In this document: positions 3,308-60,185 of the stretch, piece by piece | Position numbering within the stretch: the stretch's first letter is position 1 | Layout: each line of letters opens with the position of its first letter | NCBI GenBank assembly: GCA_001643675.2 | Contig: LSRY02000016.1 | Coordinates: 558,001 to 622,000 of the forward strand | Reading direction: 5' to 3' | DNA length: 64,000 bases | Source of the DNA: Monocercomonoides exilis PA203 | Lineage: Eukaryota > Protista > Preaxostyla | Made by a program: the position numbers and the translations under genes | The notes under the pieces: generated by a model | Databases searched by the model: none | What the model saw: only the letters and a program-made list of their open reading frames with translations | What the model was told of the DNA's origin: nothing

Positions 3308-3759
3308 AATTATTATGGTTTTTTGAATAGTTTTTTCATTTGAACAAATTAAAAAAATTAAATAACCAAAAAATGTTTTATATAGAAATGTTCGAAATAG
3401 AAGAGAAGATGTTTATTACAAATCAAAATTTATCGATTAGTGAAGAAAAAGGAAAATAAATAAATAATAAGATCTTGATAATAAATAAAAAACACTTCAT
3501 AATGTTGTGATAGATGAACAGTGTGTTGATTAGTGTAATGTCTTAACAATTTATGTGGAATAAAAACGAGTAGTCATTTTCAAAGCTTTTGTTGAAGAAA
3601 AACAAACTCGTTTTTCAAATCATTTCACCATAAATAATTCTATATCGGAAAACTAAAATTCAACATCGAATATTCTTCATCATAAAAAATTTTTTTCAAA
3701 ATTCACATTCATTTCAGTTTCTTTTTTTTCAGTAAATTATCCGTGAAATTTATCTATTT

Positions 3760-4987: not shown

Positions 4988-6526
4988 TCATTGAATATGA
5001 ACAAACTCGCACTTTTCTCCATGTTTACACCAATGATGCTTCGAAAAGAATACACACACCCCTCGCTTGCGCTTCGAAGCACATTCCCCATCGCCTGATT
5101 TGATTAAAGGTGGAGGGCCGATAAATATTTCCGAGGCTCGAAAGTTTGATGATGCATGCCGATCAAAAACTACACGAAAATATGCACGCGCCCCAGGCTT
5201 TATAAGAGATTGCTCTTCTGGATCAACAATAGATGTGTCAAGATAGACATTTGATGGAAACGATCTTGAGGCTATCCATGCACTGTGGGACTGAAGATTA
5301 ATATTTGCAAGCAAATATCCTTCATAATGCGTTGGCAAAGGAAGCTGTGGAGTCGGAGGTGATTGCAATTCACTCGATTGCAACTTAGAAGGAAATGAAG
5401 CATCACATGCAGATGATGTCTCCAATTCTTTTTGCGATTTAATAGAGGCCCCAAATGAAGAAGGAGTAACATTTCTATGAAGCCTTGTATCTTGTGAATA
5501 ATATGGTAATGATTCTTGAAAAGCTTTGTATTGCTCTTGTTGAAATGGAAAAGCGAAAAAATTCAGAGAATTCGGAGGCAACATGGTGGCAAGCATTGTC
5601 TGAGTTGCTGTAGAAGTTGTATTCCAAGTTGAAGAATCACCAACAGCAGCATCTGCTGTCTGGGATTGTGAAAGCTGCTGAGCTTGCATGTCTACGGTTT
5701 GTGTGCTTGCTGTTTGTTGTTGTTGCTGCTGTTGTTGTGTTTGAGAAAATACATCTTTTTTGGTTTGCAATTCTGCAGACATGTAAAAGGGGTCAAAAAG
5801 GTTAAAATTGAAAAAAGAAAAAGGTGAAGAAGAGATTGCAGGAAGAGATTGTGAATTGAATGAAACATCATTTTGTAGATTTTCAATTGGGTGCAATCGC
5901 TTAACTGTTTGAGTTGACGTGTCAGACATCTCTGGCAATAAACATGACAAACTATCTGTCGATGTTTCAATAGAGACGTGCTCTTTTTGAGAATTTTCTT
6001 TATGACTTTCTGATTTATGTTCTGGAGCATGAACGCTCATCTGGGAAATTTGGATATTCAATGGAGGAAGTCCGCAATTAGTTATGTTAGATAAATGATT
6101 TCTACGGAGGCAATTTGGAGAAGTCGATAGTGCAGTATTAGTCCAAACATTTGATCGAGTGCCACATCCCACATCTGTTTTATCTTGTGTTTCAGAACGA
6201 AATTGAAATGAAGAAATAGAAGTCAATACTTTCGTATGTGGCTGTGTTGGGGCCAGAGATGATTGCGCCAGAGTCGTATCATCTCCACTCAATTTTGCGC
6301 TCAAAGAAACTTCGCTCAACAAATCGTCTTCAGTGCTATCGAAATATGATGAATTATCGTCTGATGATGATAATTCATCATCATCATTGCTTTTCGCATT
6401 GTCTAATTGATCATCCGAAAAAGAGTCATCATCTAATTCTGCTTTTTCTTCTTTTATATTTTCTTTTTGCATTTTATTGTTTATTTCATCATGATTTTGA
6501 GGTAAATCTTGTGAAGAGTTATCCAT
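4988..6526 (-). CDS. Low-complexity protein with C-terminal cold-shock/OB-like domain and CCCH zinc finger (putative RNA-binding protein)
   Basis: 512-aa ORF. C-terminal CVFFSKHHWCKHGEKCEFVH = C-x8-C-x5-C-x3-H. The preceding 'SAWIAS..SNVYLDTSIV..LIKPGARAYFRV..FRASEI' follows the cold-shock-domain pattern. Confidence 0.75.
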   Translation of the reverse strand: MDNSSQDLPQNHDEINNKMQKENIKEEKAELDDDSFSDDQLDNAKSNDDDELSSSDDNSSYFDSTEDDLLSEVSLSAKLSGDDTTLAQSSLAPTQPHTKVLTSISSFQFRSETQDKTDVGCGTRSNVWTNTALSTSPNCLRRNHLSNITNCGLPPLNIQISQMSVHAPEHKSESHKENSQKEHVSIETSTDSLSCLLPEMSDTSTQTVKRLHPIENLQNDVSFNSQSLPAISSSPFSFFNFNLFDPFYMSAELQTKKDVFSQTQQQQQQQQTASTQTVDMQAQQLSQSQTADAAVGDSSTWNTTSTATQTMLATMLPPNSLNFFAFPFQQEQYKAFQESLPYYSQDTRLHRNVTPSSFGASIKSQKELETSSACDASFPSKLQSSELQSPPTPQLPLPTHYEGYLLANINLQSHSAWIASRSFPSNVYLDTSIVDPEEQSLIKPGARAYFRVVFDRHASSNFRASEIFIGPPPLIKSGDGECASKRKRGVCVFFSKHHWCKHGEKCEFVHIQ

Positions 6527-20556: not shown

Positions 20557-23500
20557 ATGTCCGACAAAACTAATCATTCATTGACATGCATCTCACCGTT
20601 GGAACGCACTATTTATGAACTTAATTCTGATATCCTTGAAGAATTAGTCAGAGACAATTCATCGATGCTCAAAAAGTATCCTATCTATTTGTGCTTTTGT
20701 AACGATTGCTACGGGGATGATACGGATTCATTTCAACTGGCAAATGTCGATGGAATAGGACAAGTTATTCAGCCCCAATTTATCAAAGAAATGGATTTTA
20801 GGTTTGATATTTTTACAGTTTTTCTGGTTTTGTAATTTCCTGTTGTTATCTTTAATATTTTTTCAAACGCACTTTTTTCGTTGATTGATAAATAGTGAAA
20901 ATAAACTTACACAATTTCAAGCAAAAATTCTTAGTCGAAACAAAAAAGGAGAGATGAACGGTTTCCCGAAACTTCGGCGACTTTGGCTTGACGATAACTT
21001 TATTTCGCGTGTTTCATTTGATGGGCTTCCGAAAGTCGAAGAATTATATTTGTCTGGAAACCCTCTTCACAGACGTCCAGCGTTTGATGGCCTTCTCTCG
21101 CTTTCAATTTTGAATCTTTCTGCATGCCAACTGAATGGATCAATAAAGCCTTTGCAAAAGCTATCATTATCACTTGTAAATCTTAATTTATCAGATAATT
21201 TATTCGATTGGAATGAACAAGCTTTTCAAGAGGTTTGCTTTTTTTAAGCATTGTGCTTTTTATCAGATTATATTTTGCATATATTTCAAGAATATAACTG
21301 TTTTATCCCATCTCAAAAAATTAGAAATACTTTTTCTTGTACCAAACCCTTTTACTGAATTTTATGAAGGGTGGGTGCAGCATGTGTATCATGCTTGCAA
21401 AGACGGTAGATTGAAAATGATGGATGGGATGGACGTCAAAAAGTCAGACAAGAAAAAAGCACCAGAGCCACTTGTTTTGACAGAAAAAGGTAAAGAAGCC
21501 ATTAATGGCAGTGGGGGAAAGAAAAAGAAAGAAACTTTGGTTTCATCCGAGGAGTCATCCTCATCCTCATCCTCATCCTCCTCCTCATCATCATCCTCAT
21601 CCTCATCATCATCTTCTTCGGCATCTCCTCTTCCTTCATCTTCTTCATCTGAATCTTCTTCCTCCTCCTCTTCGACTATTGCTGAGCCTTCTTCTTCGTC
21701 AAGTAGCCAAATGCAAAAGGAAGAGACAGGTCCAGAAAAGAAAAGTGATTCAGTTGATGAAGATGGTCAGCCATCAAAGCAACAAGATGGGAAATCCTCA
21801 TCTGAAACAGCTGAGAGCGGCAAAGTGACAGAAGATGACAGCGAAGCACCAAAAGAATCAAACGAGGATGCAGATGAAGGAAACGAAGAGAGCAGCAGAG
21901 CAGAAAAAGCAGACAACCAAGCACCAACACCTTCTCCTTCTGTTGTTCCCACGCCCATCCTACCTTCCTCACTGGTGCAATCAACCACACAACACGCCCA
22001 ACAGAACTCGAACTGTTTTGTGTTTGCTGATTTTGCAGCGATTGTTACACGCTGCTTCGAGCCAGGTGCCCACCCAGTTGCCCAGCTGGACCTTCTGAAG
22101 CGCACCATCGACCGCTTTGCTTCTCTCCCGCGCGAAAACGTGCCGGCTGCGCTGTCTCCTTCAGGAACAGCGTTGGAGCAGCGCACAATCGACTTCGGTG
22201 GCGTTGACCCGCGTGCAGCTGCTGAAGAGATTGTGGCGGTGATGGCGAAGCTGATAGGGACAACCACACAAGAGGAGGTGAAGAAGAGGTGTGTGGAGTG
22301 TCTGGCGGCGCTGATGGTGCAGCTGATGGTTGAGGTGCAGAAGGAGACAGAAGACGTCGGCAGATTCAGCGAAAGAGAACTGCGGCTGAGAGAGAGACAG
22401 AAGGAGAACACAGACGTGGGGCTGTTCATTGCCCGGGCTGTGGTGAAGAGAGACGAGGCAAACACGCACACACAGCCACTTGCAGAGTTGACTGCTCTTC
22501 CTGTTCTTCAGTTGATGGAGAAGCAGATCGAGGCAACTCGCAGGCTGCGCGATCTGCCTCAAATACAGCTCACCCACCAGCCTCTTCCAAAACTTCCATC
22601 GAAATCCAAATCTTCTTCTTCTCCACCGTCTTCACCACCTGCGAAACAAATTCCGCCTTCTGCAATGCCAAACCAGCAGTTAAACAAGCCGTTTAATCAA
22701 CAAGTCGGTGGCACTCCTCAGCCAGGAGGGCAACCACCACAGTTTCCTAACCACTTTCAGCAGCAGCAAATATCTCCTTTGTATCAACAACAGCAGCAGC
22801 AGCAGATGAGGTTCAATCAGGGGAGGATGGCAGCTACCCCTTCGCCTATGCAGGGAATGCGCTATGGAGCCCAGACACCACAACTCAATGGCGGGGCAAT
22901 GATGCGGCCTGCTTCGGCTGCTCCTTCGTTTCCCGGTGGCTCTTCTGCTTCTCCAATGCTGCCTAATCAGCCTGGCTCGAATTCTGCGAATCAGACTCCT
23001 TCTCAGCCTCTTCTTCCACCTATGCCAAAGATATCGTTCTTTGGCCACGAATGCGAGTGGAGTGCGACCGATCGGCATTTTCTTTCCCTCATTGCGATCT
23101 TGAAGCCTCACAGACAGGACTGGGAAGGGCTGAAGAAGAGCTGGGAGTGGAGTGGAAAGGGGGGAGGTGCTGGAAGCACAGTAATCGGAGGGGCTGGAGT
23201 GGGTGATAATGGAAACAGCAGCGGAAGTGGAAGCATCAATGATTTTGTTGAATATTCTCCATTTCTACCGCCAAAGGAGAAGAAAGACGGAGAATACGGA
23301 GCATTTCAGCTGTATCAGCAACAGAAGCAACAGAACCAGCAACAAGAGGGACGAAGAGCACCCCGATCGCGCTCAGCCAGGCAGCAGTCAGAAGCAGCAG
23401 AGAAAGCGAATGCGGCCGAAGCAGACGAGTTTTCAACGTTCACAGCGCCGATTGTGGAGAATGTGCCTACGTTTGGTGGGGTGGTGCAACTGTCGCTTGT

Positions 23501-26500
23501 GATGATACTCGACTCGCTGCTCCGAAAGGAGGTGAAGAACATCCTGCCTGACAGCCTGACTGTCCTGTCGCTTCTGTGCGAGGTGCGGAACTTCATCGCC
23601 ATCACCCCACGACTCACGTTCCCTGTGTTGCTCTGCTCGCTTTTCAACCAGCTGCTCCCTCTTTCACCTGACAGCCAATTGACACCGCTGCACAAGCCGC
23701 TGCTGCATGCCATCGCTGCAGTTGCAGCTGATCCCTTAAACGCTCACATTTTTGCTGCAAAGGGCATCCATCGCCCACTCTTGCGCTATGTGGAGCTGCT
23801 GGAAACAGGGCACGTACTTCCTGCATCTTCTATCCCAGCTTCTTTTTCTGCCTCTGCTTCTTCTGCTTCTGCTTCTGCTTCGTCGTCTTCTTCAGCGCTG
23901 TCTCCTTCGATTAGCAGTGCTGCAGACAAGTATGGTCGATTTGAGTCACTTCTGTTTGTGAACCGCGCAGACATGAGCAACTTGGCTGCTCTTGTGATTG
24001 ACTGTCTGTCTGGTCTGTGTGCCTCTCCATTCATTCAGAGAGACTGCGCAGAGGTTTCGTCTTTCTTCCTGAAAATCACAGAAATTGTGCAGATGGCTGC
24101 TCCAACACCGCGTCTGGCTGCCAGCTGCATCAATGCAATGGTTGCTCTGATGAAAGAGAGCGTCGAGTTTCGTCTTCCTCCTCATCTGATGAAGGCAGCG
24201 TTGAGACTGCAAGCTGCTTCAAACGCTGCTGCAAATGCATCTACTCAATCACAACCACAACAGCAGCAGCCACAACAACTGCCACCATATGGACAACCAA
24301 ATCTCCCATTCAATCGGCAGAACACATCCACACCACCGCTGGGGATGATGCAGATGAGAGGTCCCACGCCTTCTCTTCCGTTTCCTCCTCGCTCACAGAC
24401 AATGCCACCACTGCTTCCACAACAGCAACAACTGAACGGGAAGCCATCTCCTCCACCGCCAGGTGCTCGATTCACTCCTTCTCCACTTGCAATGTCTTCA
24501 GCACCATCTCCTCCTCTGGCAGCACAAGCACAGCGAAGTGCTTCTTCAGCAATGCAGAAAATCGGACCAGATCATCAGCTGACGTTTGATAGAGTGCTCA
24601 CAGTGACTGTGGATGGCTCTCTTCTTTTTGACTGTGTGGATGGCGAGAGAGGAAGGCAGATGCTGCTCAATCTTGTGCTTGAAGAAAGCGGACGCTACAA
24701 GCAAGTGAGAAGGAGAGGAGGAAATGTTGCAGGTGTTCCGATGGAGATTGCCAATGTTGCTGCAATGCAAAGAACTGCGAGTCGAATGAACGGACTGATA
24801 ACACCTGGATTGGGTGCCACTGGCGCAGCAGAAAGAGCAGGGAATGTGGCTGTGGTGGGAGCAGGTGGAGAGATTGAGAGGTCAGTCAGTCGTGTTGGAG
24901 GAGGAGGTAGTGGTGGAGCAGATAAGATGCAGAGAGCGATGAGTCGAATGGAAGGAATGGTTGGTGTAGGGATGGCGGGGGAGATGGAGCGTGCAATGAG
25001 CAGGATGTCGACTGTGTCGATGGCAGTGCAGCAATATAACGATGAGTTCGATGATGATTTTGGAGGATTTGACGACGGCACATTCGGAGAAGAGAGAGGC
25101 AACGCAGAATCTGTCTCTGCCGATGACGAAGTTGCAGTTCCTCCGTTTTCATCAATACACACAGCCTCTTTCATTGCACTGTGCGATGCTCTTCTGTCAC
25201 TCACAGTCTTTTGTGCAAACAAAGCCCGTCGCAACCAGAAGGCAAAGCAACTTTGCATGAATTCTGTTCCCACACTGCTGAAAATCTACACAATGCCATC
25301 TCATTCTCTAAAGCTGAAGATTTTGGGGGTGTTTTCATCGGCACCTTCTCTTTTGACTCAGCCTGATCAGATTGAATCACTGGCAGCACCATTGAAGCTA
25401 TCATCGGTTGGAGATTTACTTCAAGGAAGAACAGAACACATTGTCATCAGCATCCTTCACTTGCTCAGCCGCCTCCTTATTGATCCAGATGCTGCTTCTG
25501 ATGGATGCAGCACAGCAGTCAAAAGGGACAGATCACAAAGCGGTCGAAGTATCAATCCAGAAATCCAGCGTTCTTCCACTACAACCAGTGCGATGCTCTC
25601 TTCTTCAAAGAGTGGAAAAAGCTCCTTGTCTCGCTCGTCAACTGATCTTAGCACATCTCCTTCTGTCAGCCCATCTTCTTCTCCATCACCTTTGTCCTCA
25701 TCCAATCATTCATTGCAGCATCCGCGCAATCTTTTGATGACTGATCGCTTCACCTATCTTGTTGCTGATGTGATCAACATTCTCATCACAAACACTGCAC
25801 GCACAGCTGACGAGACAGACAACGTGAAGAAAGTGCTCTGGTCAGCGGCACTCAGCTTCCTCGCAGCTGCTGAAGAGAGCGGATGGAAGGAGGCGAAGCG
25901 GGAAATGCTGCGCAGCGGCAGGTGTCTTTCGCTTGTGGCGCAGAACGAGGTGAGATACGGCGAGGCAACCGGCTGTCACATCGAAGACACGCTCATTGGA
26001 GATGACATGGATGCGCTGCTGACTGCTTTCCAGACGCTTCCATCAGCTTCCTTTGTGGCCTTCCGATTTGCACGGAGAATTGCCCATCTGGTTGAAATGC
26101 CACATCCTCCACAGCCTTCGCTGTCGATTGGATCGCTGGCACCGCTGCCGTGGAAAGCAGACGCAAAAGCTGAGTGTGAGTGGACAAGCGTGCTGGGAGA
26201 GGAAGACTTCAAAGACGCTCCGTCTCAAAGTGCTTCGTCGTCTTCTGCAAAACGAGCAGATGGAAGCGATTCTTCGTCAAGCGACGACACCTCACCGGCT
26301 GCAGTGTTTGCACAGCTGCATGCGAATCAGCTTGTGTTTCTGTCTAAAAATGGGCTGCAGCTGATGCTGTCCTTCTTCAATGCACATGCATCCACAGCGG
26401 CATCTCCGCTTAAGAGGATTGTGCCGTACAAGTGGAAGACGATGGTGAACGAGACTATAAATGCGTATCAGGAAGAAAGAGTTCATCAGGCGCTGAATGC

Positions 26501-29500
26501 AAACAACGAAAGAAAAGACAGAGGAAGATCGATATACCACTCAAATAGCAAAGTTTCTTCATCTTCATCTGCATTTTCTTCGAGCATTTCATCAAACATG
26601 CAATCACATTCACCTCAGAATCCTCCATCTTCCTTCTCTCAAAATCCAATCTGCGTCAAAACCTCAACCAACTTCTCTGCTTTTGCCAATGCTGCCTATT
26701 CAGGAAGATATCGAAATATGGCAAACTCATATTCCTCTCCACAATTAGGATTAGCTCCTCCCACAGCGCCTGCACCCACAGCTCATGTCAGAAACTCCTC
26801 AATCGGCTCCTCTTCAGCCGCGGGTCAATCAATCGATGTGAAATCTGGGTCAAAAGCTCCTTCATCCTTCTCTTCCACAGTGATCGATTTTTCATCTGCT
26901 TCTTCTTCTGCCTTGCAGACAGCTTCCTCGTCAGCCTCATCCATTTCATTGATGCATAAACCAGCTTCGGGTGATTCGCGCCATCAGTCTGGTGTGAAAG
27001 TGCCGTGGAAAGTGGCATCAAACAAAGGGCTCATGGCGCTGATTAAGTCATCTGTAGTGATTCCAGAATTGGATGTGGAAGGGTCGAGCCTTGTTGTGGA
27101 AGACGATCTGTTTTCCATCGAAGAAGGCATCCCTCTCACTTCTTCCAGAGCTCCTCCTCCTCCGCCTCCTCCGCCAGCATCAACTCGTCCTTCGCAAGGT
27201 TCTTCTGGGAAATCAGCTGAGCAGAATACTTCAAGCTATAAAAAACCAATAGCATCACCTGGTGCTCCGTTTGATATACAGTCCAGCACGTCTTCTTCTT
27301 CAAAAGGGAGCCAACAGACATGTGCGTCTGAAGATGCGTCAATTGCACCATACATTCCTCCTCCTCCGACATCCTTTGCGCCCACAAAAGAAACGCGTGC
27401 CCCAACAATTGAGGTGGAAACTGTCCTCCGCTGCTTCTTCAATCTTCTGAACTATTCTCTGCCTGCACAGCACGATGCAGCACACTCTCAGCTCCGCTCT
27501 GCTTCTCTTCTGGCGCTTCTGTGCTCTTCTGCCTTTGCACACGGACTGCTCACACTCAACTATGGTTCTCGTGTTATTTCTGTGCTGTGTGCCATCTTCA
27601 GACTGCCATCGAACGAAAGCTGTGAGAAGACGATGGATTCTGTGGAGTGTTATGATGTGATTGACACGTTTCTGAACTGGCTGCTGGAGATGTTTGAGAA
27701 GGCAATGACTCCAAATCCATATGTTGCCACGTCTTCGTTTGCATTTGGGGTCCAGCTGGGATCGTCGGTGGAGGTGGAGAAGAGGAGGAAGCAGGATATT
27801 CTGAAAAGATTGATAGAAGAAGAGAAAGCAACGAGAGAGAAAGAAGAGGAAGAGGAGGAAAGGAGGAAGAAGAAGGAGGCAGAGAAAGAAGAAAAAGCAA
27901 AAGAAGGCGAAGGAGCAAAAACTGAGGAAGGAAAAGAAAAACAAAAAGGTGAAGATAAAAAGGAGAGTGAGCAAGAAAATGATTCAGATGCACTTTCACA
28001 GGCAGATTCAAAGCCATTCGATCCTTCTGCTCTTCTTCGCCAATTGCAGTTAGCCGAAAAAGTTGTGCAGATCCGAACAGAAAGAGAGCCAGACGAATAC
28101 GGACTCGATGCATCCTCTCCCACTCTGATGACTGCATCCACTGTGTTTGTCCTGAAAGGCGAGAGTTCCGATACCCGCTCTTCGCTTGCACTGCTAACTT
28201 CTTCTTACTCCATTTACTCTCCTCTTTCTCTTGCTTCAACAGACGCTGCTCAGATGCCTCAGTTTATCAACAGCCACTCAGCTGCAACTGTTTCTGCGAA
28301 ATCACTTGCTGTTTCATCAACTGGAAATGTTGCTATATCTCCACCGACAACTCCACCTTTATCACATTCATCGTCCTCTGCTCTTATACCTTCTTCTTCC
28401 ACTTCTTCTCTTTCCTCCTCTCAGTCCTCTTCGTCGCTGTCTCATCTCCATCCTCTGCAGCAGACTGTGTTCATTGCCCCAACCTCTCCCTCTGCCGTGT
28501 GGTGTGTTCATGCTCTGCGACCAACCTGGCAGTCAAGCATCGACGAAGAGCTCCTCATCTCACAGGTTGTTGAGCTGCTGTGGCTGTTCATCACACAATA
28601 CTCTGCCCTCCCCTTCCACCCCGACCTCTCCATTTCTCAGTTCTGCCTCACTCGCATCTTTGCCAGGGTCTTTCCTCTCAAGCGTCTGGGCTTTGTTCTG
28701 TCGCTTCTGTTCCACGAGTACTCGCGAATGGGGATGGGCCTGCCAGATGAAAGAGTGCAGCTGCTCCACACAACACTCATGCAGCTGGAGTGGATCATTG
28801 TTGAGTATGTGCGCATCCACCCCAGCGAGCGCCATCGCGTGCTGGAGATGCTGACAAGAATGGAGAACGGGAGTGGAATGAAGCTCTCACCACAGTTTGT
28901 GAACGATTTGATTCGGAGCATCGAGCTCAGGCTGCTCTGTGTGAATGTGCTGGTTCCGCTCACACGCTTTGTCATCAGCAAAAAGGAGCAGGAAAGCATA
29001 ACTGTTCTGAATCCACTGACTTCTTCAAAGGGAAAAGACAAAAATTCATCATCATTATCTTCTTCTTCTTCTTCACCTTCCCAGCAAGTAGCTTCACTTC
29101 AAGAACAGCCAAAGGACCTCACTTCGTCCATTGCGCGGAAAGTGTCACTGATGTCAATGGCCTCGTCGTCTGGCACGCCTTTCATCACTTCTCGCACCCT
29201 CGCCTCTGTTGCCCCCTCCCTCACATCCATCACATCTTCCCAATCTTCTCTTTCCTCATATCGCCTTAATCCCCAAGCATACAACCCTTCCGGCTCATCC
29301 GCTCTCTCTTCCTCTGCCTCTGTTGCTTTAGCCCCGACGCCTTCCTCTTTCCTCTCTTCTTCCTCTCCAGATATCCCCACATATGCTGCCACGCTGCAGG
29401 AGCGTGTTCTTGCTGCTGCATTCGGCATGCTGTACACCTGCTCAACCGACCCCACCTCGATCGCTTCGCTCATTGCCTCGTCTGTGTCTTCTTTCCCAAC

Positions 29501-30920
29501 AGACTCATTCAAATCCATTGTGATTGTGACGAATGAGAATATTTACGTGTTCCGAGTGGCTGAGCTGGAGGAAAAAGAACAGAAGCGCAGAGCGTCTGCA
29601 GTTTCAGATGGGAAAGCACTCACTTCATGCAATTTGTTGAAAGCCGCTCAAACAGCATATAATTCATCATCATCGTCTTCTTCTTCCTCTTCCTCGTCTT
29701 CTGCTTCTTCTCATTCATCTCAACACTCTTCTCCTGCTCCATCTCAGTCATCTGATCATCCAACAGTCGATTCAATTCTTTCCTCGTTCTCTTCATCTGC
29801 ACTTCAGAAAACTCTTTCTTTGCTCAGTTGTGGCGAAGATCCGTCTGCAAACGATGCCATGCTGCTCCAACTTCCTCTAATTCATTTGGTCCACCGAATA
29901 AAACTGACTGATGTCAACGCTGTTGTTTCTTCGTCCTGCGGACAGCGTCTGGGCGTGCGCTTCAAATGCACATCACTTACTTCAACTCTGTTTTCTCATT
30001 CTTCAACTTCCTCCTCCTCCTCTTCTTCTTCTCGATCGGTTCTTCCTTTCTCCGCTTTCCACCTTCATTGCACTTCCTGTTCCCCCATTTCTGCTCTGAT
30101 GTCTGCTCTTCGTGACTGCTCGCATCTGCGAGGCTTTCCTGTTATGTCTGACCGTCTCATCCACAAGGCTCTTATTCCATTTCTCGCTCTTTCTTGTCCC
30201 GCTGCCCCTGGCCTGCAAAGGCAGCGTGAGCGTGTTTTGTTCATTGGCGAGTGCAGCAAGCTCCTCTCAAAGAACAAAAACCAGCCGAGAATGCTTGTCC
30301 TGACCACACACAGTCTCTTTGAGTTTTCTTACGCTGAGAACAATTGGCTGGGCTCTCCTCAGAAGTTCTTCTCGCAAAATAGACAGACGCCGCTGACTCT
30401 GTTTTTGGAGACTGAAATTCAAAAGGCTTCGATGGAGGCTACAGAAGGGGCAGTGCGCAGTGCTAGCAGCTCCTCATCCGATTCAATTGACAGGCCTCCT
30501 TCTCCTTTGAAGCAACGTTCTGGAACGACTCCAACGCCTTCACCTTCCTCTTCTCCGTCTCCTTCTCCCACTCCATCTCCTTCTCCTCCTTCCTCTCCTT
30601 CTCCTTCTCCCTCTGGTGTTATATCCAGCTCAACCACTTCATCTTCCACTCATTCTTCCACATCCCATATGCATAAGAGATCGACCAGTAGCTTTGGCTC
30701 TCCCTCTGCCTCTGCAAAGCCACAGCTCCGCTGCCCGCACTGCAGTCTGTGTCCAGTTGAGAATGACTCTCTCAGCATTACTGTTATCATCGATGCACCT
30801 ACACGCCCAGCTCCAGAGTGTACTACATATCGCTTTAGTTGCTGCTTTACGTTGCATTCGTTCATCGCTGCTTTTCGAAATAGAATTGCTGTGATGTGGA
30901 ACGAATCGATTAAAATGTAA
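20557..30920 (+). CDS. Giant (~3400 aa) protein: N-terminal LRRs with LRRcap, ARM/HEAT-like helical regions, C-terminal PH-like domains
   Basis: Exon 1 from MSDKTNH (20557). LRRs 'FPKLRRLWLDDNFIS', 'LPKVEELYLSGNPL', 'LSILNLSACQL', 'LVNLNLSDNLF'; cap 'PNPF..LKMMDG'. Then the 3235-aa ORF with 'IVIVTNENIYVF' and 'VLFIGECSKL..QPRMLVLTTHSLFEF'. Confidence 0.8.
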
Positions 30921-48246: not shown

Positions 48247-49291
48247 TTACTCTTGTGATTGATCATTTTCTTGTTCAGAAGGTTGCTCTTGAACTGGCTC
48301 ATTGTTTGGAATCTGTTCTTCTGAAACAGAATCATATGAAGATGCAACAACTCCACCTGCAATCCATTTAACTTCCACAGGTTCGTTGTGCAAGCTCAGA
48401 GGAGATGTACATTCCACAAGTTGCTTCACCTCCACTTCAGACCCAGGTTCCATAAAGGAAGCCTAATTTAAACAAAAAACAAAACGAGAAAATATTTAAA
48501 AAAATTTGAGTTATAAATATTAATTATCATACGCAGAAACGAATTGAATGAGGCAATCCAGAAACGAGAACTGGCTGCACAACTGAATTATGATAGAATC
48601 TTGCAACACTTGGAGATGAAGTCATATCAACTTCCACTGCAACAACGTCTCCATCTTTCCAATCTTCGCATCCAGCTGTTGCAACTTCATCAACAAACAC
48701 GTTACCACTTAAAAAATTATTTAAATAAAAATGAAATATTAATAAATAATTAATTGAAAAAAGAAAACATACTTGATCCCACTATATCCCACGCTAACTG
48801 TTTTCATATATTTATGTTGTATTTTAAAAAAATTCAAAAATTTGAAATAATAATTAATCATACTCTTGCTAGAGCCAGGCGAATAAAACGAAGGAACATC
48901 AGCCTCTGCATCAACAATACCAATGACTATTATATTATAAAACAATACGTGTGAAATTAATTAGGAATAAAAAATCCGTACATCTATCGACATTTGAAGA
49001 TGAAAAAACAAATTCACAGCGCCAGATTCCAGAGCTTATTATTTTGTTAACGCAAATAGTAGATGAATTTATTTTCGTATGCGCAATAACTTTATTTTTG
49101 TCAACAGTGAGGATATCAGCGTTTGGCAACAAAAAGTCGATGTCTGCGGAGACATCAACATTTACAACTTGTTTTGTAGATGAACCATTTCCTTCATCAA
49201 CTTTTAGTTCAGAAATATTAGAAAAATCGAAAAGCATAAAGAGAAAAAATAAATTCGAACCTTTTTGCTTCTTTGAACAGCAACAACCCAT
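48247..49291 (-). CDS. Dually acylated (MGCCCS) SPRY/B30.2-like protein, multi-exon
   Basis: N-terminal MGCCCSKKQK. 'STICVNKIISSGIWRCEF', 'IGIVDA', 'SVGYSG' form a SPRY-like pattern; last exon is ORF 48247-48453. Confidence 0.7.
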
Positions 49292-49383
49292 TCGGCAGTT
49301 GAAAAATAATTAACAATGGGCTTTGTGATCGTCTGGTACATAATTAGCTAGAATATTGGGCTACCCATTAAAAAAATTGAAAA

Positions 49384-52300
49384 ATGATTCCTCACGCTTG
49401 TGACAATTGCAGAAAGAAGTTTGCGTTAATGAATTTCAAATTATGTTTTATTCTATTAATTGCATGTTCATTTTTATTTTTTAGAAAAATTAAATGCGAT
49501 GGGTATAGTTTCACATTTTTTAGAATATTTAAATATTTCCAAATAAAATAATGAAAAATTTAATATTATTTTATGTTGTTTTGTTTTATTTTAATTTTTT
49601 ATAAATTATTTTAGAAAGCAACCATGTATGAATTGCCACAACCGTTCTATTGAATGCACCTATAAGGCACCTCTAAAAAAACGAATCCCTGCAGGTATAA
49701 CCTTGATAATTACCAATTTGCTTCAAGATTTTTTTTGAATTATGAATATTATGAAATATAGGAGCAAAAAGCAAAGCATACTCCAAATACGCTTCAAAAT
49801 ATCCTGTTAAACCAAAAGGTCGTTCAATCGTCACAAATAGGCAAGATACAACATTTGTTTCAACTAATGTTGCACGCACAATTCCAAAGGCTATTAACTC
49901 TGATTATCTATCTTCTGACCCTGCGCGAGTTTCATCTGCATTTCCTGATCCAACTTCATCGCAAATCCCTTCATTTCATAATCCTCTTTATCACAGTCAT
50001 AAATTTCCACGTGGAGATCAGCATACTGGAGTCACTCCATCTGCACCATCAATGACATCATCATCTTTTAATTCTTCTGTTATGTCTTCAACTCATAACT
50101 CCTCTACAAGTCATTCTCAACATATTCAAGGGTTCTCATCGGAAAACTCAAATATATCAATAAATCCTACTACTCAAGCTCCACCACTCTCTTTATTTTT
50201 ACCATCATCCTTGCCTCCATCGTCCGTTTCACAATTTCCTCGAAAAACATCTTCTTATCCATCAACACAATTCTCGATGCCTGACAAGTATGTTCCATCT
50301 TCATCACGTGGAAGTGAAAGTGCTTCAACTCCAGCTTCATTTCCTTCAGTTAGTTCGAGATATTCATCTCTATCTTTCCCCCCTTTGTCACCTGCCTCAC
50401 GAGAATTGGACAATGACCCTCTTCGAAATAGCAGTTCAAGAAGCTCAAGAAGCAATCCAGAGTTTTCTGGTTCAAGTGATTCTATTTATCGCAGTGACGA
50501 TTCACCACGTGCACTTGAAGAAGACGCACTGTACAAAACAGCACTGAGACGGGAGAGACACGAAGAGAGGATGCGCCGCAGAGCCGCTCGGCAGCAGCAA
50601 AGATTCCGGCCTCTCTATGAAATGAACTCTGCCTCATCACAAAGTGAAGGCGAACAATTTGCTTCAAAAAGAGGCAAAGGAAAAAGATGGGTCTTTGGCA
50701 ATGAGGAGCCGTACAACCCATTTCCATCTGCTTCTCGTTGTCGTACATTTGTTCCACTTCCTCTTCCCACCCAGCAGTTTTCACCAGTAACACAGTCAGA
50801 TTCTTCTCTTTCAGCATCAACCACAACAACCACTGCACCAGCATTTCCACAATCATCATCTTCTTCTGCTTCAATTTCTTCTTCTTCAACTTCTTCATTT
50901 AATCCAACTTCCCCCACAAAATTAACAGACGCATGCTCATCTTGCCTGTCCCAAGCGTTTCTGCGGAACTCTGCCTCTGTCTTCGACATCAACGTCCCTT
51001 TCATTGAAATCGGACCCAACAAGCTGCTTTATTTGGAAGTGTACCGCAAGTTCATCAACCCACTGCTGGGCATACACGGAGACGATCTGTCGTATTTTGC
51101 TCATTTTCCATTCAACGCACGAGAGGTGATGATGCAGGCGAAGCTGATGGAAAAACGTGAGAAAGAAAGAGAAAGAGTCGATTTTGGGGGAAAGGCGAAG
51201 GGGAAAGCAAGAGCGAAAGCGAAAGGGAAAGGCAAAGCTTGCTGTGAAACCAGCCAAGGGCCAACACATTCATTCCCAGAAAACGAAGCAAACGACAGAA
51301 AATTCATGTTCCCTTCAGCATCAGCACAAGCATCGTCATTCTCATCAGGTGCGAATCCTTCTCTTGCCACTGTGTCACCTGCACTCTCTCCTGCGCGTCT
51401 GAGCCGTGTGGAGCATCTTGTGCTGCATCTGGTGGATGCGCTGCACCTGCAGTTCTACTCCATCATCGCCATCGCTGCGCTCCTCATCGGCCACAACCAC
51501 ACCGCTGCTGTGTGTGTGAGGCAGGCGCGCGTGCTGAGTGCTGTTCTGACCGACGTCGAGGGGAACATTCGGCCGCAGATGAAGCATTTGAACGACAGAA
51601 TCACAAACAACATGGCGCGCATGCGGGAGCTGGCGAAGTGGATCGACAGGCATCTCCCGCTCCTTAGCTCTGCCTCCGCCGAGGAAATAGCAGCAAATTT
51701 CGCAGAGGCTTCTTTAGAGAACAAAGAATTCCTCACTCAGAAGTTAGACTCGAAGAACTCCTGTCTGTCGGCATCTGACCGCTTTGCACGCACGCTGCGC
51801 AAGAGAGCGTCTGTTCTGTTTCGGCTGCTGTCTTCCTCTGCCGTGTCTTCCTTTGTCGACTCGCTGACCATCTCGTATTGTGTCTCCCGTGCCGTCACAC
51901 TCACCCAGCCAGAGCTGCTGGAGGTGTGCTTCATCATCGAACACACCCGCGGGCTGCTGCTTCTCTCGCGCCTGTTCAACACACACCCGTCTCGGCGCTC
52001 TCTTTCTCTGCTGAAGTCAGCAGAGAACTTCTTCGACACGCAGTGGATGCGAACAGTGCTGTATGGAGAGACTTCACAGCTGCACCAACTGGCACTGCAC
52101 CCATCACAGCCTATTCAATACTCCCCTCTGACAGATGGTGTGTCGAAGGCGCTGAAGTGGATGGCAGAGATGATGAAGGAGCTGACGGAGGATGAAGAGG
52201 GGAGACTGAGGGAGAGGGAGAAGGAGAGAGAGAGGGATAATGGGGAGGAAGAGAGTGTAGGAAAGGAAGAGAAGGAAGAGAAAGAGAAGAGAATGGAAAA

Positions 52301-53594
52301 AGATGACGAGAAAGAGAAGAAGAATGATGAAAATGATAAGACAAAGATGGAAGCTACAGATGAAGATGAAAGAAATGATGGCACCAAACATACATCTTCT
52401 GCAGAGCAAAAGAACACAAGTGAAAACGAAGCGAAAAATGATATTCCAACAAACAGCAAAGAAGAAACCAAAGTTTGCACATCAAATGCAGATGCTTTTG
52501 ATTCAGTCCACACAAGCACTTTGATGGAATCAGCAGCACACAAAGCTAAATACGAGTTCAACGACGATGACCTCAAAGCAATGACGCTTCTGATGGATGC
52601 TGTTAACAATGCCCTGGATGATAAAAGTACAAAACAGAAAACTTCCTCTTCCTCTTCTTCCTCTTCATCGTCTTCTTCTCCTCTCCCTTATCCATACAAC
52701 GAATCCCAGCCATATTTTCTCTTCCGAAATAACCAAAATCTGTCTGCAATGGATCTCTTCATCAATTCTTCTCGCATTCTCTCAAACTTCCGATGCCAGC
52801 GATGTTATCAGCTTAGCAGTTCATCGCAGAATAATTGTACTTCAGCTTCATCATCTTCCACTTTCACATCATCAGACCCCTCTTCCTCTTCCTCTTCCTC
52901 TTCCTCTTCTAATAATAATCCTCCTTCATCGTCATCACCTTCTTCTTCTGATTCTGTCTCTTCTGATTCACTTCACTCGTATCGCGTGGTGACTGAGCCA
53001 ACACCTATTTCCCATTCAACTTCATTTTATGAGTCAATTCTTGGCTTCTCTCAAACGCTATCTGCGCTGCTGATGGCTGCACTGGACAGAATTGTGCCGA
53101 CTCCCTCGCCAGCCAGCCGTTCGTCGTCTGCTGCTTTTCTTTTTGCCTCTGCGTCTCATAATGCTGCTGCTTCTGTGCCTTCTCCTTCATTGCCTCTCTC
53201 TTCAACCGCATCTTCGTCGCAATCTCCAAATTCTTCATTGCCTTCTTCTTCTTCTTCCTCTTCCTCCTCTTTATCCAACACAACACCGCATCCCCAGTCT
53301 TCTCCTTTCTTCGTGCTGAACACCTCACAAGTCGCCCCGACTCTTCAGTTGCTCGACTCCCCCTTTGCATTCACCGCTGCTTCTGCGCCCTCATTCTCTG
53401 TTCAGCAGAGCATCCACCACCCAATTTCCTCTTTGATCAACATCAGCTCCATTTTGACAACTTCTTCGCTGTTCCATGCATCGCTAGACAACTTGGCACA
53501 GACGGTGTCTAATGATCTTGCTAATCTTGTGAATCGAGTTGCTTCTTCTTCTTCATCTTCTTATCCCTCTTCCACCACTTCATCCACTTCATCC

Positions 53595-53639
<45 letters not shown>

Positions 53640-56600
53640 TCTTCTTCTTCCTCCTCCTCCTCATCGTCGTCATCTTGGCTGTATCGAGCAGTCACTGAGC
53701 CCTTCATCAAGACGCCAAACGCATCTCTCACTTCAACCTCGCAGCTGATCCGCCCAATTGCCCAGCGTCTGTCCTCATTTGGCGGGTCGCTCCTGCGCCA
53801 AGTGTCAGCTGCAGCTGTTTCGCATTCTTTGCGCACACCACACAACCCTCATCAGTTTAACAGGCCTCTTCAGCTGGAATACTCCTCTCATACAAAACAT
53901 TATCATGCTCAGGGAAATCCTGCGTTCAGTCTCAATCAGTTTGGGCATATGCAGAATGAAAAACAATATCAGCATCATAATCAACAACAAACGAGTTCTT
54001 TTGGCATTTCACCTTCAGCAACGATGTCACTATCTCCTTCGCACACAGCTTCACAAACGCAAATCTCTTCGACGCCTTCTTCGCAGCAGGAGATGTTTGT
54101 GAGGATGGTGCGGTTCATCCAAACAAAACACTCGTTTTCATTAGACGACATTTCACACTCCTCAAATGAATCATCTCCTTCATCCATTTTCTCTTCTTCT
54201 TCATCATCTTCTGCTTCTTCTTCTGCTTCTTCATATCAGCAAGCATCATTGCCTTATTTGCACACGCCCAAAAGCAACAGAATGTTCTCAGATGATTTTC
54301 CAAGTCATTCAGTGAACAACTGCCAAATGATATCTCCTCTGCCTCATTCTTCATTTCAGCCACTGACAACTTCAACTTTCCCCAAAACATCAACAGAACA
54401 AGCAAACACAGCTGTTTCTCCGCAGATGCACTCCCCATCACACACTTCTATGCCACAAGATTTATCTTCACCATTGCCTTCTTCTTCTTCTTCTACTTGT
54501 TCGATGAATTCCTCTTTACAATCACTTCCTGCTTCCTCACAAACACCTCCTCCAAATTCCATTTCATTACAGTCAAAAGAACATTCTCCTGATTCATCAG
54601 ATCTTTCTCCTTCAGCCACATCGCCTTCATCTGATTCCATTTCATCACTTCCATCTGCTCTGTCTTCAGCAACTTCTTCTTCTTCTTCACCATCATCATC
54701 CACTTCATCTTCTGCTGTATCCACACCAAACACTTCGTCTCTCCAACACAATCCTCCATACAACACCCTCGATCTCCTCTCCTCTTCTCTCCCATCATTC
54801 GCCCAATCTGCCTTGCACTCAGCCACACTCTTCCACTCTCTTTCTCTCCAAACACAGTCATCCATCAGACAGCGCTTAACTGCTGCTCTGCACGCCACCC
54901 ACTTCCTCTTCGTATCTCTTCTTCCTGTTGCCTCTCTGCTCACCACATCTGCCATTCCTTACGATTACTTCCCGTTCGACGTTATCCGACTTCCCACCAC
55001 GCACAGCATAGCGCTTCTCCGCTCGCTCAGCCATTTTGACTCGGTTCTCGCAGAATGTGGTGGAAGAAGGAGAGAATGTGTGGCTGCTGTGGTAGAGGAG
55101 AAAGGGAACGCGGAGCAGGAAAGATTCAGAAGCAACACCAATGACAACAGCTGGAATGGAGGATGGCAGGCACATGAACCAGAACTGGTGTCGTGTGTTG
55201 TTGATGCGAAGGAACAGAACATGAGTTGTTTGACTTCATCTGGCAATTCTGAAGGCAATCAGAACATTTTCATCAAGGACGCAAGAAGAAAGGCAGGAAA
55301 GCCACCATCTTTTCATTTGACTGATTCAATTGCTCCACTTATACTTCCTCCGAACGAGGTGGCCACTGCAATGCTCAGCTTTTTCAGTTTTGATAATCCA
55401 AAAAAATTGGAAAAAGAGGCAGAAAAGAAGGTTGAAGATGGAAAAGTTATGGAAAAAATGGAAGATAAAACGATATTTGATTCAAAAATTTCGTCTTCGA
55501 ATAGCTCATCATTGCTTTCCACATCCTCTTCTATTTCTTCTGTTTCTGCTTTGAAATCAGAAGACACCTCTATTTCAACCTCATCCAATGATCATTCGGA
55601 AATTTCATTTAATGAACAATCTCTGAAGCCATCTTCACCTTCTCAAACATCACCAAAAAAACCAATCGGCTCTCCAGCTCATCTTTTATCTTCTTCTTCC
55701 TCTTCTTCTGCTGCTACTTCTTCTGCTTCGGCTCCTCTTTCATTCTGCTGCCCATGCGGCTGCACTGTGACAGACGGGAAAGACGTGTATCTGAGCTGCA
55801 TTGTGGAGTCGTTCATTCCACCGCCTCTTTCTCAAAGTGCTTTGAACCAAATGGGACAGGGAATCAGCATTCCGTTGGATGAAGAGTGTTTGAGTGAAAA
55901 AATTGACTCTGCTAAAAATGAAGTGAATATTAAAGCAGACAAGAATACATCTTCAAATTTGACGGAGAAAGTTAAGACTGATAATTCAGAATTGGCAAAA
56001 GAAACGATAACTAATCCATCAACAGCTGAAATACAATCATCATTCCCTGCTTCTGCTCAACTTCCTGATACTGCTGATGAAAAGAAAATTCAAACGTCGT
56101 CTTCTGTCTCTTCAGCTTCACATATTAAAAGCGATGAAAACCCTTCAATTCAACAAAACAATCAAAGTTCTTTTGATTCCTGCAACTCCTCTTCTTCCTC
56201 TTTGCCATCGTCCTCATTCACACCCGATCGCTGCCCGTCTCCTCCTGTTCTGACCCTCCATCTGCAGCAGAGCAGGCACAAGCACTGGTCTCCAGCCACA
56301 CGCACGCCAGCTGAGTTGATGCTGCAGACGCTGAAGGGCCATTCTGTGCCCAGCAATGCTTTGTTCCCGCTCGTTGCAGTGAATGAAGTGACGAAGTTTT
56401 TTGTGCCAGAAGAGGAAGAAGAAGACGAGGAGGATGAAGAAGATGAAGGAGATGAGGAAGACGAAGAGTTAAAAGTCAAACAACAAGAAAAGGAAATTAT
56501 TTCAGATCAAACAGAAGATGAAGAAACTTCCACAGCAAATCTTAAAAAAGACAAAGAAGATAAGAATTTGAATGAACCATTTCAATCGTTGCCATCAGAT

Positions 56601-59600
56601 ATTTCCTCAGAAAAAAATTCTTTATTATCAACTTCTTCTGGTAATGACTTTTCTCCCTCATCTATTTCAAGCTCAATTTCAACATCAAGCACCACGCAGT
56701 TTCCTGTCGTAACTGAATCTATTCAATCACCATCAACACCACCTCAAGCATCTTCACCATCACCTTCTTATCTACGGCGCGATTGCTTCCGCTGTCTTTC
56801 GACCATTCTTTCCTCTCTTTCTGCTTCATACAACGAGGCGTTTGCCTCTTCTATTCTTCCGCTTCCCTCGTTTTCGCCTTCTGCTCTCATTTCCTCTTCC
56901 ACCCTTCCATATGTCACAGCTGCATACATCGCCCATCTATCTGTTGCAGCTTTTTGCCTCTCAACATTCAAATCATCTGAACATTCGGCCATTTCTTCTT
57001 CTTTGAACTCATCCCCTGCCAAGTCTTTCACACACAAACAGATTTTTGAGAATCCGCAAAAGCTCAAAAGTGATCGGTCATTTGCAGCGGCTGCACTTCT
57101 TGTGGCTAATGAGGCAGTGCGATGGATGATGCAAATGGCTGTTGAGAAAGGTGTCGGATCGTTTGCATTCCATCCACTTTCGTACCATCCAATGACTTTT
57201 GTCGCCATCACTTATGGATATCATCTTCGGATGCACTGCAAGGCTGTTGCTCGAACGATTAATCAAAAAGAAAAGAAGGAGGATGATGAAAAGGTGAAAA
57301 GTGAGAGAAAAAATATTGATGATATGATAAATGGCACTAATGTCACAGGCAATCCCAATGAAAGCACTTTTGAAAATGGAAGATACCTTCCACAGAATGC
57401 AAAAGCAGAAGAAAAAAGCGAGATTGAATGGGAATGGACAGTGAACGATACAAATCTTTTGGAGGAGTCATTCATTCACTACTTCATTCTATTCCAACTT
57501 ATGCATCTTGTTCGTTCAGATTCTGCAATCCACTATGCGTATCAGTCTTCAATGGAATTTTTCAAGCAGCTCTGTGTGAATTATTCGCAGAGTAATACAT
57601 CCAATCCAACATCCCAATCTTTGTCTCGCCCTCCTCCGCCATTGTTTCTTCCTCCTCTGCTTATTCAGACAGTAAAATTCTTTTTGAACCATTGTGCACA
57701 CTTTCCAAACATTGCCAGACGATACCCAGCACAATGGGTTGACACAACGCCTCTAAATGCTTGCAGAATAGTGCCAGTGCATCTCAGTGGAAGCCAGGTG
57801 TGGAGGGAAGATATTGTTGTTGGTACAGATGAAGGAGAATGGAAGGCATGGCTGAGAGAAAGAGAGAGGCTGGAAAGGAAGCAAAAATGCGAAAGTGCAA
57901 AAGAAGAGAGCAGAGAAGAAGAAACAGGAGGAGATGCGAATGAACTTAGAGATAATGAAATTCCTGCGAATGAGGCTGAAGGGAAGTGGAGAGCAAAAGC
58001 AAAAGCGAAAGAGCAAGAGAAGGCCAAAGGGAAAGGGAAATGGAAGGAAGCAGGCAAAGGAAAATTATTCTCTGCAAAAGATATAATAGCAGATGATTCA
58101 ACGAGGAAAAAACGGGAAGCAGCAAGACAGTCAATGGCAGCATCTATTCTGGCAAAGATAGCAGAGACGCGGATGGAGGTGGAAGGAGAGGAGATTAACG
58201 ACTTGGCACAAAGAGAAAATGGGATGAATGGAGAAGAGGAAGAGGAAGAGGAAGAAGAGAATGATGATGAGGGGGAGGAAGAAGGAGAAGAAAGTGCATC
58301 AGATAGAGATACTAATGGAAAGCTTAGCAAAGATATAGATATGAATGATGATGCAAACGAAGGCAATCTGAGTGGAAATGGCGATGGAGATTCTAAAGTG
58401 AATTTCTTACAGAAGAAGAAAAGGAGGAGGCGGAGAGCCGAAGTGAGTTGGGATGATCTTCAAACATTTGAGAGAAAGGATAAAAGGATGAGAATTGAAT
58501 CAGAGGTAGACAATGAAGAAGATCGTGACAGCAGCAACTCAAACAAAGCGAGAACATATATGAGATATGAATCATTAAATAACAGAAAAACCCCATCATC
58601 ACCAGACATGTCCGAAGATTCAGAGGGTTCTTCGCTTGATTTTCTTTCGGATTTGGAAGATGACGAATCAAAGATTGAAAGCAACTCAGCTATTGATCGC
58701 TCTAATATTCATAATGAAGGAATAATCTTTGAAGCAGAAAGAACAGTTGGAAGAGGAAGAGGAAGGGGTAGAGGTAGAGGCAGAGGCAGAGGAAGAGGAA
58801 GAGGTGCTTCTGCAGTTCGTCCTTCTCCTCTTTCGCATTCCGAGACAGTGGAGGCAACCATTGCTCCAGCCACGCGAGGAAGAAGAGGGAGAAAAAGAAG
58901 AAGTGAAGTTTATGAGCAAAGCGATTCTGAGGCAAGCACTCCATCTTCTCGTTCTTCTTCTTATTCTTCTCATTCATCTTCAGTATCTTCTCATTCATCC
59001 TTTGAATCATCTGAAGGTGTCGACGAAATATTGGAATCTCTTCCTCCAGAGAGCAAACCACAACAGCAGCCACAAATTATGTTTCATGAAGAGCATCAAT
59101 CACCAAATGATGTTTCCTATGCACCCTCTTTAGTTTCTCCTTCATCCTCATCTTCTTCAACGTCGAAGACAGATATCACACTGATATCTGCTCCTGCACC
59201 AATAACTATCCCATCTTCTCCTTCTCCATCAACATCATTTTTGTCTCCATCAGTTACAAACAGACTTCCTAACAGTTCTTCTCAATCATTCCGAATGCCA
59301 ATTAATTCAAATGGGAAGGGTTCAACACAGTTAATTGAATCTTATCCTTCTTCTTTTCAATCCAATTCATCAACACCTTTGTCGAACCTTCACTCTAATG
59401 CATCAGCATCGGTCTATGCTCCTTTATCATCTCAGTCATCTTCCTATCTCCAGAACACTTTCCAGAAAAGTGCCCCGTTTGGTTCGATGGCTCTTCCTTC
59501 TCCGTTCATCATGTCTTCTGGCGCAAACAAACAAAGTCAACACTCAGCTCTTCTCAACATGGCAGGACAATCTTCTCAGCAGCCACTACTCCCAGGAGAA

Positions 59601-60185
59601 GATACAGTTCATTCGCCAACAAATTACACACTCTCTTCGTCTTCTGGTCAGATTCCATCAAATTTAACTGGTACTTCTTCTTCTTCTTCAACTCCCTCTT
59701 CTTTCCAAGCAAAGCATCAAGATCCCTCAATCTTGCATAATTTCACTCCTTTTGTGTCTTCAACAGTAATCCCTACATTTTCATTGACTTCATCATCATT
59801 ATCAACTAGTCTTTCATCACCAATGCCTAATCCTATTGACCCGCCACCGTCAATGGGCTGGGGAATTTTGGACAATGCTGCAAATACATCTTCGTCGTCT
59901 TCTGACTCTTTTACAATGCCTATACCATCTTCATCTTCAACTCAATCTTCTTCATCGTTATCTATTGGATCTAATCTATATACTACAAATTCATCTTCAT
60001 CTCCGTTTGTTTCATATTCAAATAGCGATCCTGACTCTTTCTCTTCAACCTTTGAAACAACGGATGAGCTTGGTAACTTTTCAACTGAAGGTTCACTTAG
60101 TCCAACATTTTCTATTTCCACAAATTTTGTTCCTGATGATTTTTCTCATTTCTTCACATCTTCATATGACTTGTATGGATCGTAG
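49384..60185 (+). CDS. Giant (~3518 aa) Zn(II)2Cys6 (GAL4-type) zinc-cluster transcription factor-like protein, 4 exons
   Basis: Exons 49384-49418, 49485-49502, 49615-49694 and 49762-60185, all GT-AG and in phase. They give [41 protein letters not shown] = C-x2-C-x6-C-x5-C-x2-C-x6-C, in frame with ORF 50052-60185. Confidence 0.88.

Follow-up and report, generated by a model that had tools for sequence, protein, structure and literature searches.

Split zinc-cluster genes in oxymonads and a possible link to the fungal Zn2Cys6 and MHD architecture

The window analyzed here, a stretch of 64,000 nucleotides from Monocercomonoides exilis PA203 (contig LSRY02000016.1), raises the question of whether an oxymonad gene encodes a DNA-binding domain of the GAL4 type and, if so, whether the rest of its protein is also related to fungal regulators. 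A first-pass annotation made from the sequence letters had read such a domain across three short exons, heading a protein of about 3,500 amino acids. Zinc-cluster factors may be ancient, with many losses, or of fungal origin, with occasional transfers, a choice that is stated as open in the literature (PMC5415576, PMC5611559). A finger of 30 residues cannot settle the origin; an MHD-like partner region of several hundred residues, together with fixed intron sites, gives usable characters.

Structure and expression of the zinc-cluster gene

The zinc-cluster gene is confirmed as real and expressed. Its four exons, all on the forward strand, form one frame of 3,518 codons, close to the protein length first proposed, with a sole stop at 60183–60185. 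Exon 1 (49384–49418, 35 nt) holds the start codon and the first two cysteines, exon 2 (49485–49502) is a frame-preserving microexon of 18 nt with the third cysteine, and exon 3 (49615–49694, 80 nt) holds cysteines four to six and a basic linker. Introns 1 (49419–49484), 2 (49503–49614), and 3 (49695–49761, past the linker) are GT-AG introns of 66, 112, and 67 nt, in phases 2, 2, and 1, respectively, with 79%–89% AT. Exon 4 (49762–60185) runs for 10,424 nt with no stop before the terminal one, and its product is 20.6% serine.

RNA evidence came from the contigs of four runs, all from one metatranscriptome study, which we compared with the window up to position 52000. In all four runs, a contig joins 49418 to 49615 with the exact microexon letters between them and omits 49695–49761, so the junctions given in the first-pass annotation (49418/49485, 49502/49615, and 49694/49762) are exact and are all spliced in RNA. 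The contigs start at about 49379–49382, just ahead of the ATG, and overlapping contigs tile exon 4 to 52000 with no further splice joint in that part. We read exon 4 as a single 10.4-kb exon because the frame is open and collinear conserved blocks continue to position 57743, with RNA contigs as far as 52000. No form skipping the microexon occurred among the contigs of the four runs, although contigs cannot reveal rare skipping. Eight ATG-started versions of the long reading frame had no exact match in the protein collection, and homology searches returned no self match.

The cysteine spacing across exons 1–3 is C-x2-C-x6-C-x5-C-x2-C-x6-C, which fits the Zn(II)2Cys6 (PF00172) pattern that we used, C-x2-C-x6-C-x5-16-C-x2-C-x6-8-C. 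Exon 3 by itself matches PF00172 positions 16–39 with 21 bits, equal to the Pfam cut-off (E 3.7e-4). The GAL4-type domain assigned earlier is supported. The DNA-contact residues of GAL4 between Cys2 and Cys3 are R15, K17, K18, and K20, and the window cluster has basic residues at all four positions. By alignment of a relative from Streblomastix strix to the GAL4 structure, the equivalents of K18, K20, and Cys21 lie on the microexon, and the K18 equivalent is invariant in the microexons of the family (10 out of 10). Every sequence test applied places the window protein among Zn2Cys6 domain proteins. After the linker, residues 46–440 are mostly rich in serine, proline, and threonine with few hydrophobics, and by composition no GAL4-type coiled coil is evident.

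A neighboring gene lies head to head on the reverse strand (48300–49291). The start codons of the two genes are 92 nt apart, and a promoter common to both is possible. It has at least five RNA-supported introns and one exon of 25 nt. These introns resemble those of the zinc-cluster gene in size (55–70 nt) and AT content. The neighbor's product begins Met-Gly-Cys-Cys-Cys, a possible lipid anchor, and on visual inspection its body resembles a SPRY domain; Pfam searches with two of its exons returned nothing useful. Elsewhere in the window, a stop-free forward reading frame of 3,235 amino acids (21213–30920) had no exact match in the protein collection and showed a weak match to Myosin_TH1 near its end (E 2.6e-4, below the cut-off).

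Relatives in three oxymonad genera

The first relative found with exon 4 was MONOS_12918, at 27% identity. We considered it as an orthologue from another species and rejected this, as the window itself is from M. exilis, making MONOS_12918 a paralogue. A profile of these two bodies, searched against 1.84 billion representatives, returned 21 matches. Among the 13 that were identified, all 11 with a named organism are oxymonads, comprising three M. exilis, two S. strix, and six Blattamonas nauphoetae clusters, and the other two are metagenome fragments. Members beside the window gene are MONOS_12918, 13268, and 7235 in M. exilis; BLNAU_19003, 1252, 1257, 11875, 7967, 2571, and 2708 in Blattamonas; and EZS28_018063, which was found with the cluster, and EZS28_006260 in S. 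strix. There are at least four paralogues in M. exilis and seven in Blattamonas, 20%–35% identical. BLNAU_1252 and BLNAU_1257 are near-identical (one 90% cluster) and share a contig, with locus numbers that differ by five, which points to a recent local duplication. Shortly upstream of two Blattamonas members, on the opposite strand, is a gene with an HSP70 domain, possibly a remnant of segmental duplication.

We compared introns at 11 loci from the three genera: the window gene, the three other M. exilis members, five Blattamonas members (all but 1257 and 2571), and both S. strix members. Each contains a cluster with intron 1 at the same site, and 10 of the 11 have the 18-nt microexon. The eight M. 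exilis and Blattamonas relatives were chosen by body alone, and every one has an identically split cluster upstream: intron 1 lies 8 nt past the Cys2 codon, Cys3 sits on an exon of 18 nt, and the glycine codon that follows is interrupted by intron 2. This exon pattern had no occurrence in 5.9 Mb of shuffled sequence on both strands. The exon 3 equivalents of these eight relatives each match PF00172 by themselves (E 1e-5 to 0.03). In S. strix, EZS28_018063 shares the three introns as well as the microexon, whereas EZS28_006260, with introns 1 and 3, is the single locus of the 11 from which intron 2 is missing. A phase-1 intron at approximately the site of intron 3 is present in MONOS_12918 and in the two S. 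strix genes.

One S. strix relative matches the structures of GAL4, LAC9, HAP1, PUT3, and PPR1, the best being GAL4 1d66 (E 4.6e-8), and the S. strix relatives have the body of the family (hhalign E 1.4e-52). Judged from their common body blocks and intron 1 site, the window gene is a member of an oxymonad-wide zinc-cluster family. The split gene structure most likely arose before Monocercomonoides, Blattamonas, and Streblomastix diverged.

Most public gene models of the relatives lack the complete domain. The two S. strix models are intact across the cluster (PF00172 E 4e-11 and 6e-11, 42.7–43.2 bits). The complete pattern of six cysteines is absent from each of the eight models from M. exilis and Blattamonas, so that eight out of 10 are without it. 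Among these eight, the model begins inside an intron or farther downstream, leaves out the microexon, or retains exon 1 alone. We attribute the omission to the division of the cluster among conserved short exons, and claims of absence drawn from protist proteomes are therefore unsafe. The first-pass annotation had treated prior and widespread annotation in metamonads as removing the novelty of the domain. This applies in part, since UniRef labels EZS28_006260 and BLNAU_19003 "Zn(2)-C6 fungal-type", but these labels are automatic. Our literature search found no paper reporting Zn2Cys6 in oxymonads, the supplements of the Preaxostyla genome paper do not mention it, and the same search returned nothing on intron positions in fungal zinc clusters. 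New here are the oxymonad-wide family, the conserved microexon structure that hides the cluster, and, probably, an MHD-like body, all of which the earlier reading had missed.

Two public models deserve separate mention. That of BLNAU_19003 (locus 3001–3200) skips the 18-nt microexon in frame and yields a five-cysteine domain, which is either a misprediction or a real skipped isoform. In that of EZS28_006260, the cluster and the first body block occur as two identical copies (locus 3302–3520 and about 5740–5950), which may reflect a tandem duplication or an assembly artefact. S. strix reads TAA and TAG as glutamine.

Makeup and predicted fold of the body

A full-length family alignment shows about eleven collinear blocks common to the three genera. 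In the window protein, about 514 of the 3,473 residues encoded by exon 4 fall in conserved blocks, all between residues 448 and 2705, and the remainder is low-complexity. Blattamonas models are 1,243–1,872 amino acids long, and the great size of the window protein is due to serine-rich inserts that inflate a compact helical protein. Helical blocks forming the probable MHD-like region extend over 50970–52133 (residues 448–835), a placement drawn from the family alignment, the Blattamonas fold, and the ESM Atlas. Further conserved blocks lie at 54840–55103 (residues 1738–1825), and the alignment places C-terminal helical blocks at 56838–57743 (residues 2404–2705). Ten of 11 members have a CxxC motif past their first helical region, at 52794–52805 (residues 1056–1059) in the window gene, and a cysteine-rich motif at 55746–55763 (residues 2040–2045) corresponds to a CxC(G) seen in six or seven of 10 full-length members. 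Together, the CxxC and the distant CxC(G) could be a candidate second metal site. A basic run at 58413–58436 (residues 2929–2936) may be a nuclear localization signal.

Sequence searches did not connect these blocks to a known domain. Pfam found no domain in exon 4, and none of the 21 family members matched PF04082 or PF11951 (Fungal_trans and Fungal_trans_2). Aligning the family body with one fungal MHD protein by hhalign gave a probability of 0.6%, the body profile scored no fungal protein, and a PDB sequence search with it returned no match. One match from the body searches was dropped as repeat-driven. We note that searching the PDB with a genuine fungal MHD sequence likewise turned up no relative, so sequence searches of this kind are blind to the MHD fold.

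Structure prediction was more suggestive. AlphaFold2 modeled the first blocks of BLNAU_19003 as all-helical (pLDDT 81.7). Against 48,161 PDB chains, this model matched Saccharomyces cerevisiae Upc2 first (Z 9.8, rmsd 2.8, 116 residues aligned), followed by 6f07_A, the core chain of CBF3 (Z 9.6, rmsd 4.0, 147 aligned), a designed bundle in third place, and Candida glabrata Upc2 in fourth (Z 8.8). In a second comparison of the Blattamonas model, CBF3 chains took ranks one to three (Z 9.4–10.1). With a longer BLNAU_19003 model of lower confidence (pLDDT 55.7), 6f07_A was the top match (Z 10.4, 174 aligned) and Upc2 came third; the later blocks of this model weakly matched residues 375–547, in the C-terminal half, of a Kluyveromyces lactis CBF3 chain (Z 8.3). 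The top-ranked CBF3 chains are Cep3. Both models are of one Blattamonas protein and are not independent. All of the Cep3 and Upc2 matches (Z 8.4–10.4) fall short of about 13, the value under which this comparison calls for caution with helical proteins, and designed helical bundles stand beside them at Z 8–9.4, so the case for an MHD relies on the identity of the top matches and not on the size of the scores.

A feature search of the ESM Atlas with the Blattamonas segment pointed in the same direction, with PF04082 Fungal_trans in 25 of 30 matches (top score 0.91, 135 shared features). The window's own insert-laden segment gave generic TPR-like matches in that search, and neither Foldseek with the Blattamonas models nor the Atlas shape search returned a match. 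Cep3 is the only solved MHD structure, and the Zn2C6-MHD pair has been called fungal-specific (PMC10141177); Upc2 is a zinc-cluster factor with a C-terminal domain that dimerizes and binds sterol (PMC7397035). On balance, the predicted fold moderately favors the body blocks being a homologue of the fungal MHD, which would place the Zn2Cys6 and MHD architecture in oxymonads.

Alternative explanations, proposed function, and known systems

The window gene is likely an expressed zinc-cluster transcription factor of the oxymonad-wide family, and the alternatives concern mainly its body, role, and origin. A chance splice reading or fungal contamination is exceedingly improbable, as the junctions are present in RNA contigs, the gene is on a 1.74-Mb M. 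exilis contig, one gene of which exactly matches a single-exon protein of the window, and identical intron sites recur in three oxymonad genera, which upholds the earlier argument against contamination. A more serious alternative, which we regard as appreciable but the less probable account, is that the cluster is a true transcription-factor cluster, joined to a body that arose within oxymonads as a generic helical domain and has no kinship with the fungal MHD. Varied architectures are reported for Naegleria zinc-cluster proteins, every sequence-level test for Fungal_trans was negative, and Z values of 9–10 are within reach of unrelated helical proteins; the additional cysteine motifs and the TPR-like Atlas result for the window segment fit this account as well. 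Yet the best natural matches among all the PDB chains compared are partner domains of two fungal Zn2Cys6 proteins, aligned over the same N-terminal region, and the language-model search points to PF04082. We lean slightly toward the view that oxymonads hold deeply diverged, true homologues of the complete Zn2Cys6 and MHD (CeGAL) regulator, hidden from annotation by the microexon.

Such a protein could instead have a structural DNA-binding role, as a centromere or chromatin anchor like yeast Cep3, and the rank of the Cep3 chains as best fold match would agree with this. That rank says little, however, because Cep3 and Upc2 are almost the sole solved domains of their kind. In addition, the role of Cep3 is a specialization of the budding-yeast point centromere, and the numerous diverged paralogues in M. 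exilis and Blattamonas fit a regulator family, so we consider an anchor role quite improbable. Concerning origin, a tentative alternative to vertical descent from an early eukaryote is that an oxymonad ancestor acquired the gene laterally from a fungus such as a gut yeast. Such a transfer would agree with the description of the pair as fungus-specific (PMC10141177), with the identified body matches, which name no homologue outside oxymonads, and with the closest non-oxymonad cluster match, a Zn_clus and Fungal_trans protein. Against it, the body has diverged from fungal MHDs past sequence detection, several protist groups unrelated to one another possess Zn2Cys6 domains (PMC5611559), and the apparent restriction to oxymonads depends on a two-sequence profile and on 13 of its 21 matches.

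If the protein is a regulator, we propose that removal of the three introns, which is observed, joins the N-terminal six-cysteine cluster and linker to the body encoded by exon 4. By analogy with the GAL4 family, the six cysteines would bind two zinc ions, the loop lysines would read a CGG-type triplet in promoters via the major groove, and the linker would set the spacing of half-sites. The scattered blocks would, with somewhat better than even probability, pack into a Cep3- or Upc2-like domain that dimerizes the protein and gates its activity, possibly through a small ligand, as ergosterol does for Upc2. Low-complexity acidic and serine-rich tracts may be disordered regions for activation or phosphorylation that contact co-activators, and the basic run at residues 2929–2936 may bring the protein into the nucleus. 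Hypothetically, skipping of the microexon, which has 18 nt and flanks of the same phase, could keep the frame, delete Cys3 and the K18 equivalent, and produce a DNA-blind isoform.

For M. exilis, an amitochondriate model, this family supplies candidate regulators that would recognize specific sequences and may be gated by a ligand. If oxymonads do have CeGAL homologues, the domain pair, and not just the finger, would be far older than fungi or anciently transferred, and domain counts in intron-rich protists would be too low.

Compared with GAL4-type proteins (GAL4, LAC9, PPR1, PUT3, and HAP1), the window cluster shares the N-terminal position, the six-cysteine spacing, the basic residues at positions 15, 17, 18, and 20, the proline ahead of Cys4, the C-x-Y, and the basic linker. 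In contrast to them, it is spread over three exons including an 18-nt microexon, and a coiled coil past the linker is not evident. The protein is also much larger, with 3,518 amino acids versus 881 in GAL4.

Outside fungi, Scazzocchio 2014 lists Zn2Cys6 proteins in Naegleria (71), Ectocarpus (24), Capsaspora (7), dictyostelids, Fonticula, and diatoms (PMC5611559). The first-pass annotation was right in placing a GAL4-type domain in a non-fungal host, but it overstated the rarity of such cases. Like these groups, oxymonads show presence or expansion at the level of a lineage; the list includes no oxymonads, and the listed proteins are not reported there with an MHD.

The closest comparison is with CeGAL (Cep3 and GAL4; PMC10141177) and Upc2. 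The window protein differs in its metamonad host, the lack of a PF04082 or PF11951 match, the splitting of its blocks by very long serine-rich inserts, and the extra CxxC and CxC(G) motifs. We set it outside CeGAL, as the MHD sequence test fails, the fold is suggestive, and the host is non-fungal, although the overall picture suggests that it works like a CeGAL factor. In both systems, a cluster is followed by an all-helical domain, a predicted one in the present family, and the best natural matches of the domain modeled here are Cep3 and Upc2 themselves. Both also have clusters that annotation missed in short upstream exons, which in fungi is a known, large-scale annotation error (PMC10141177).
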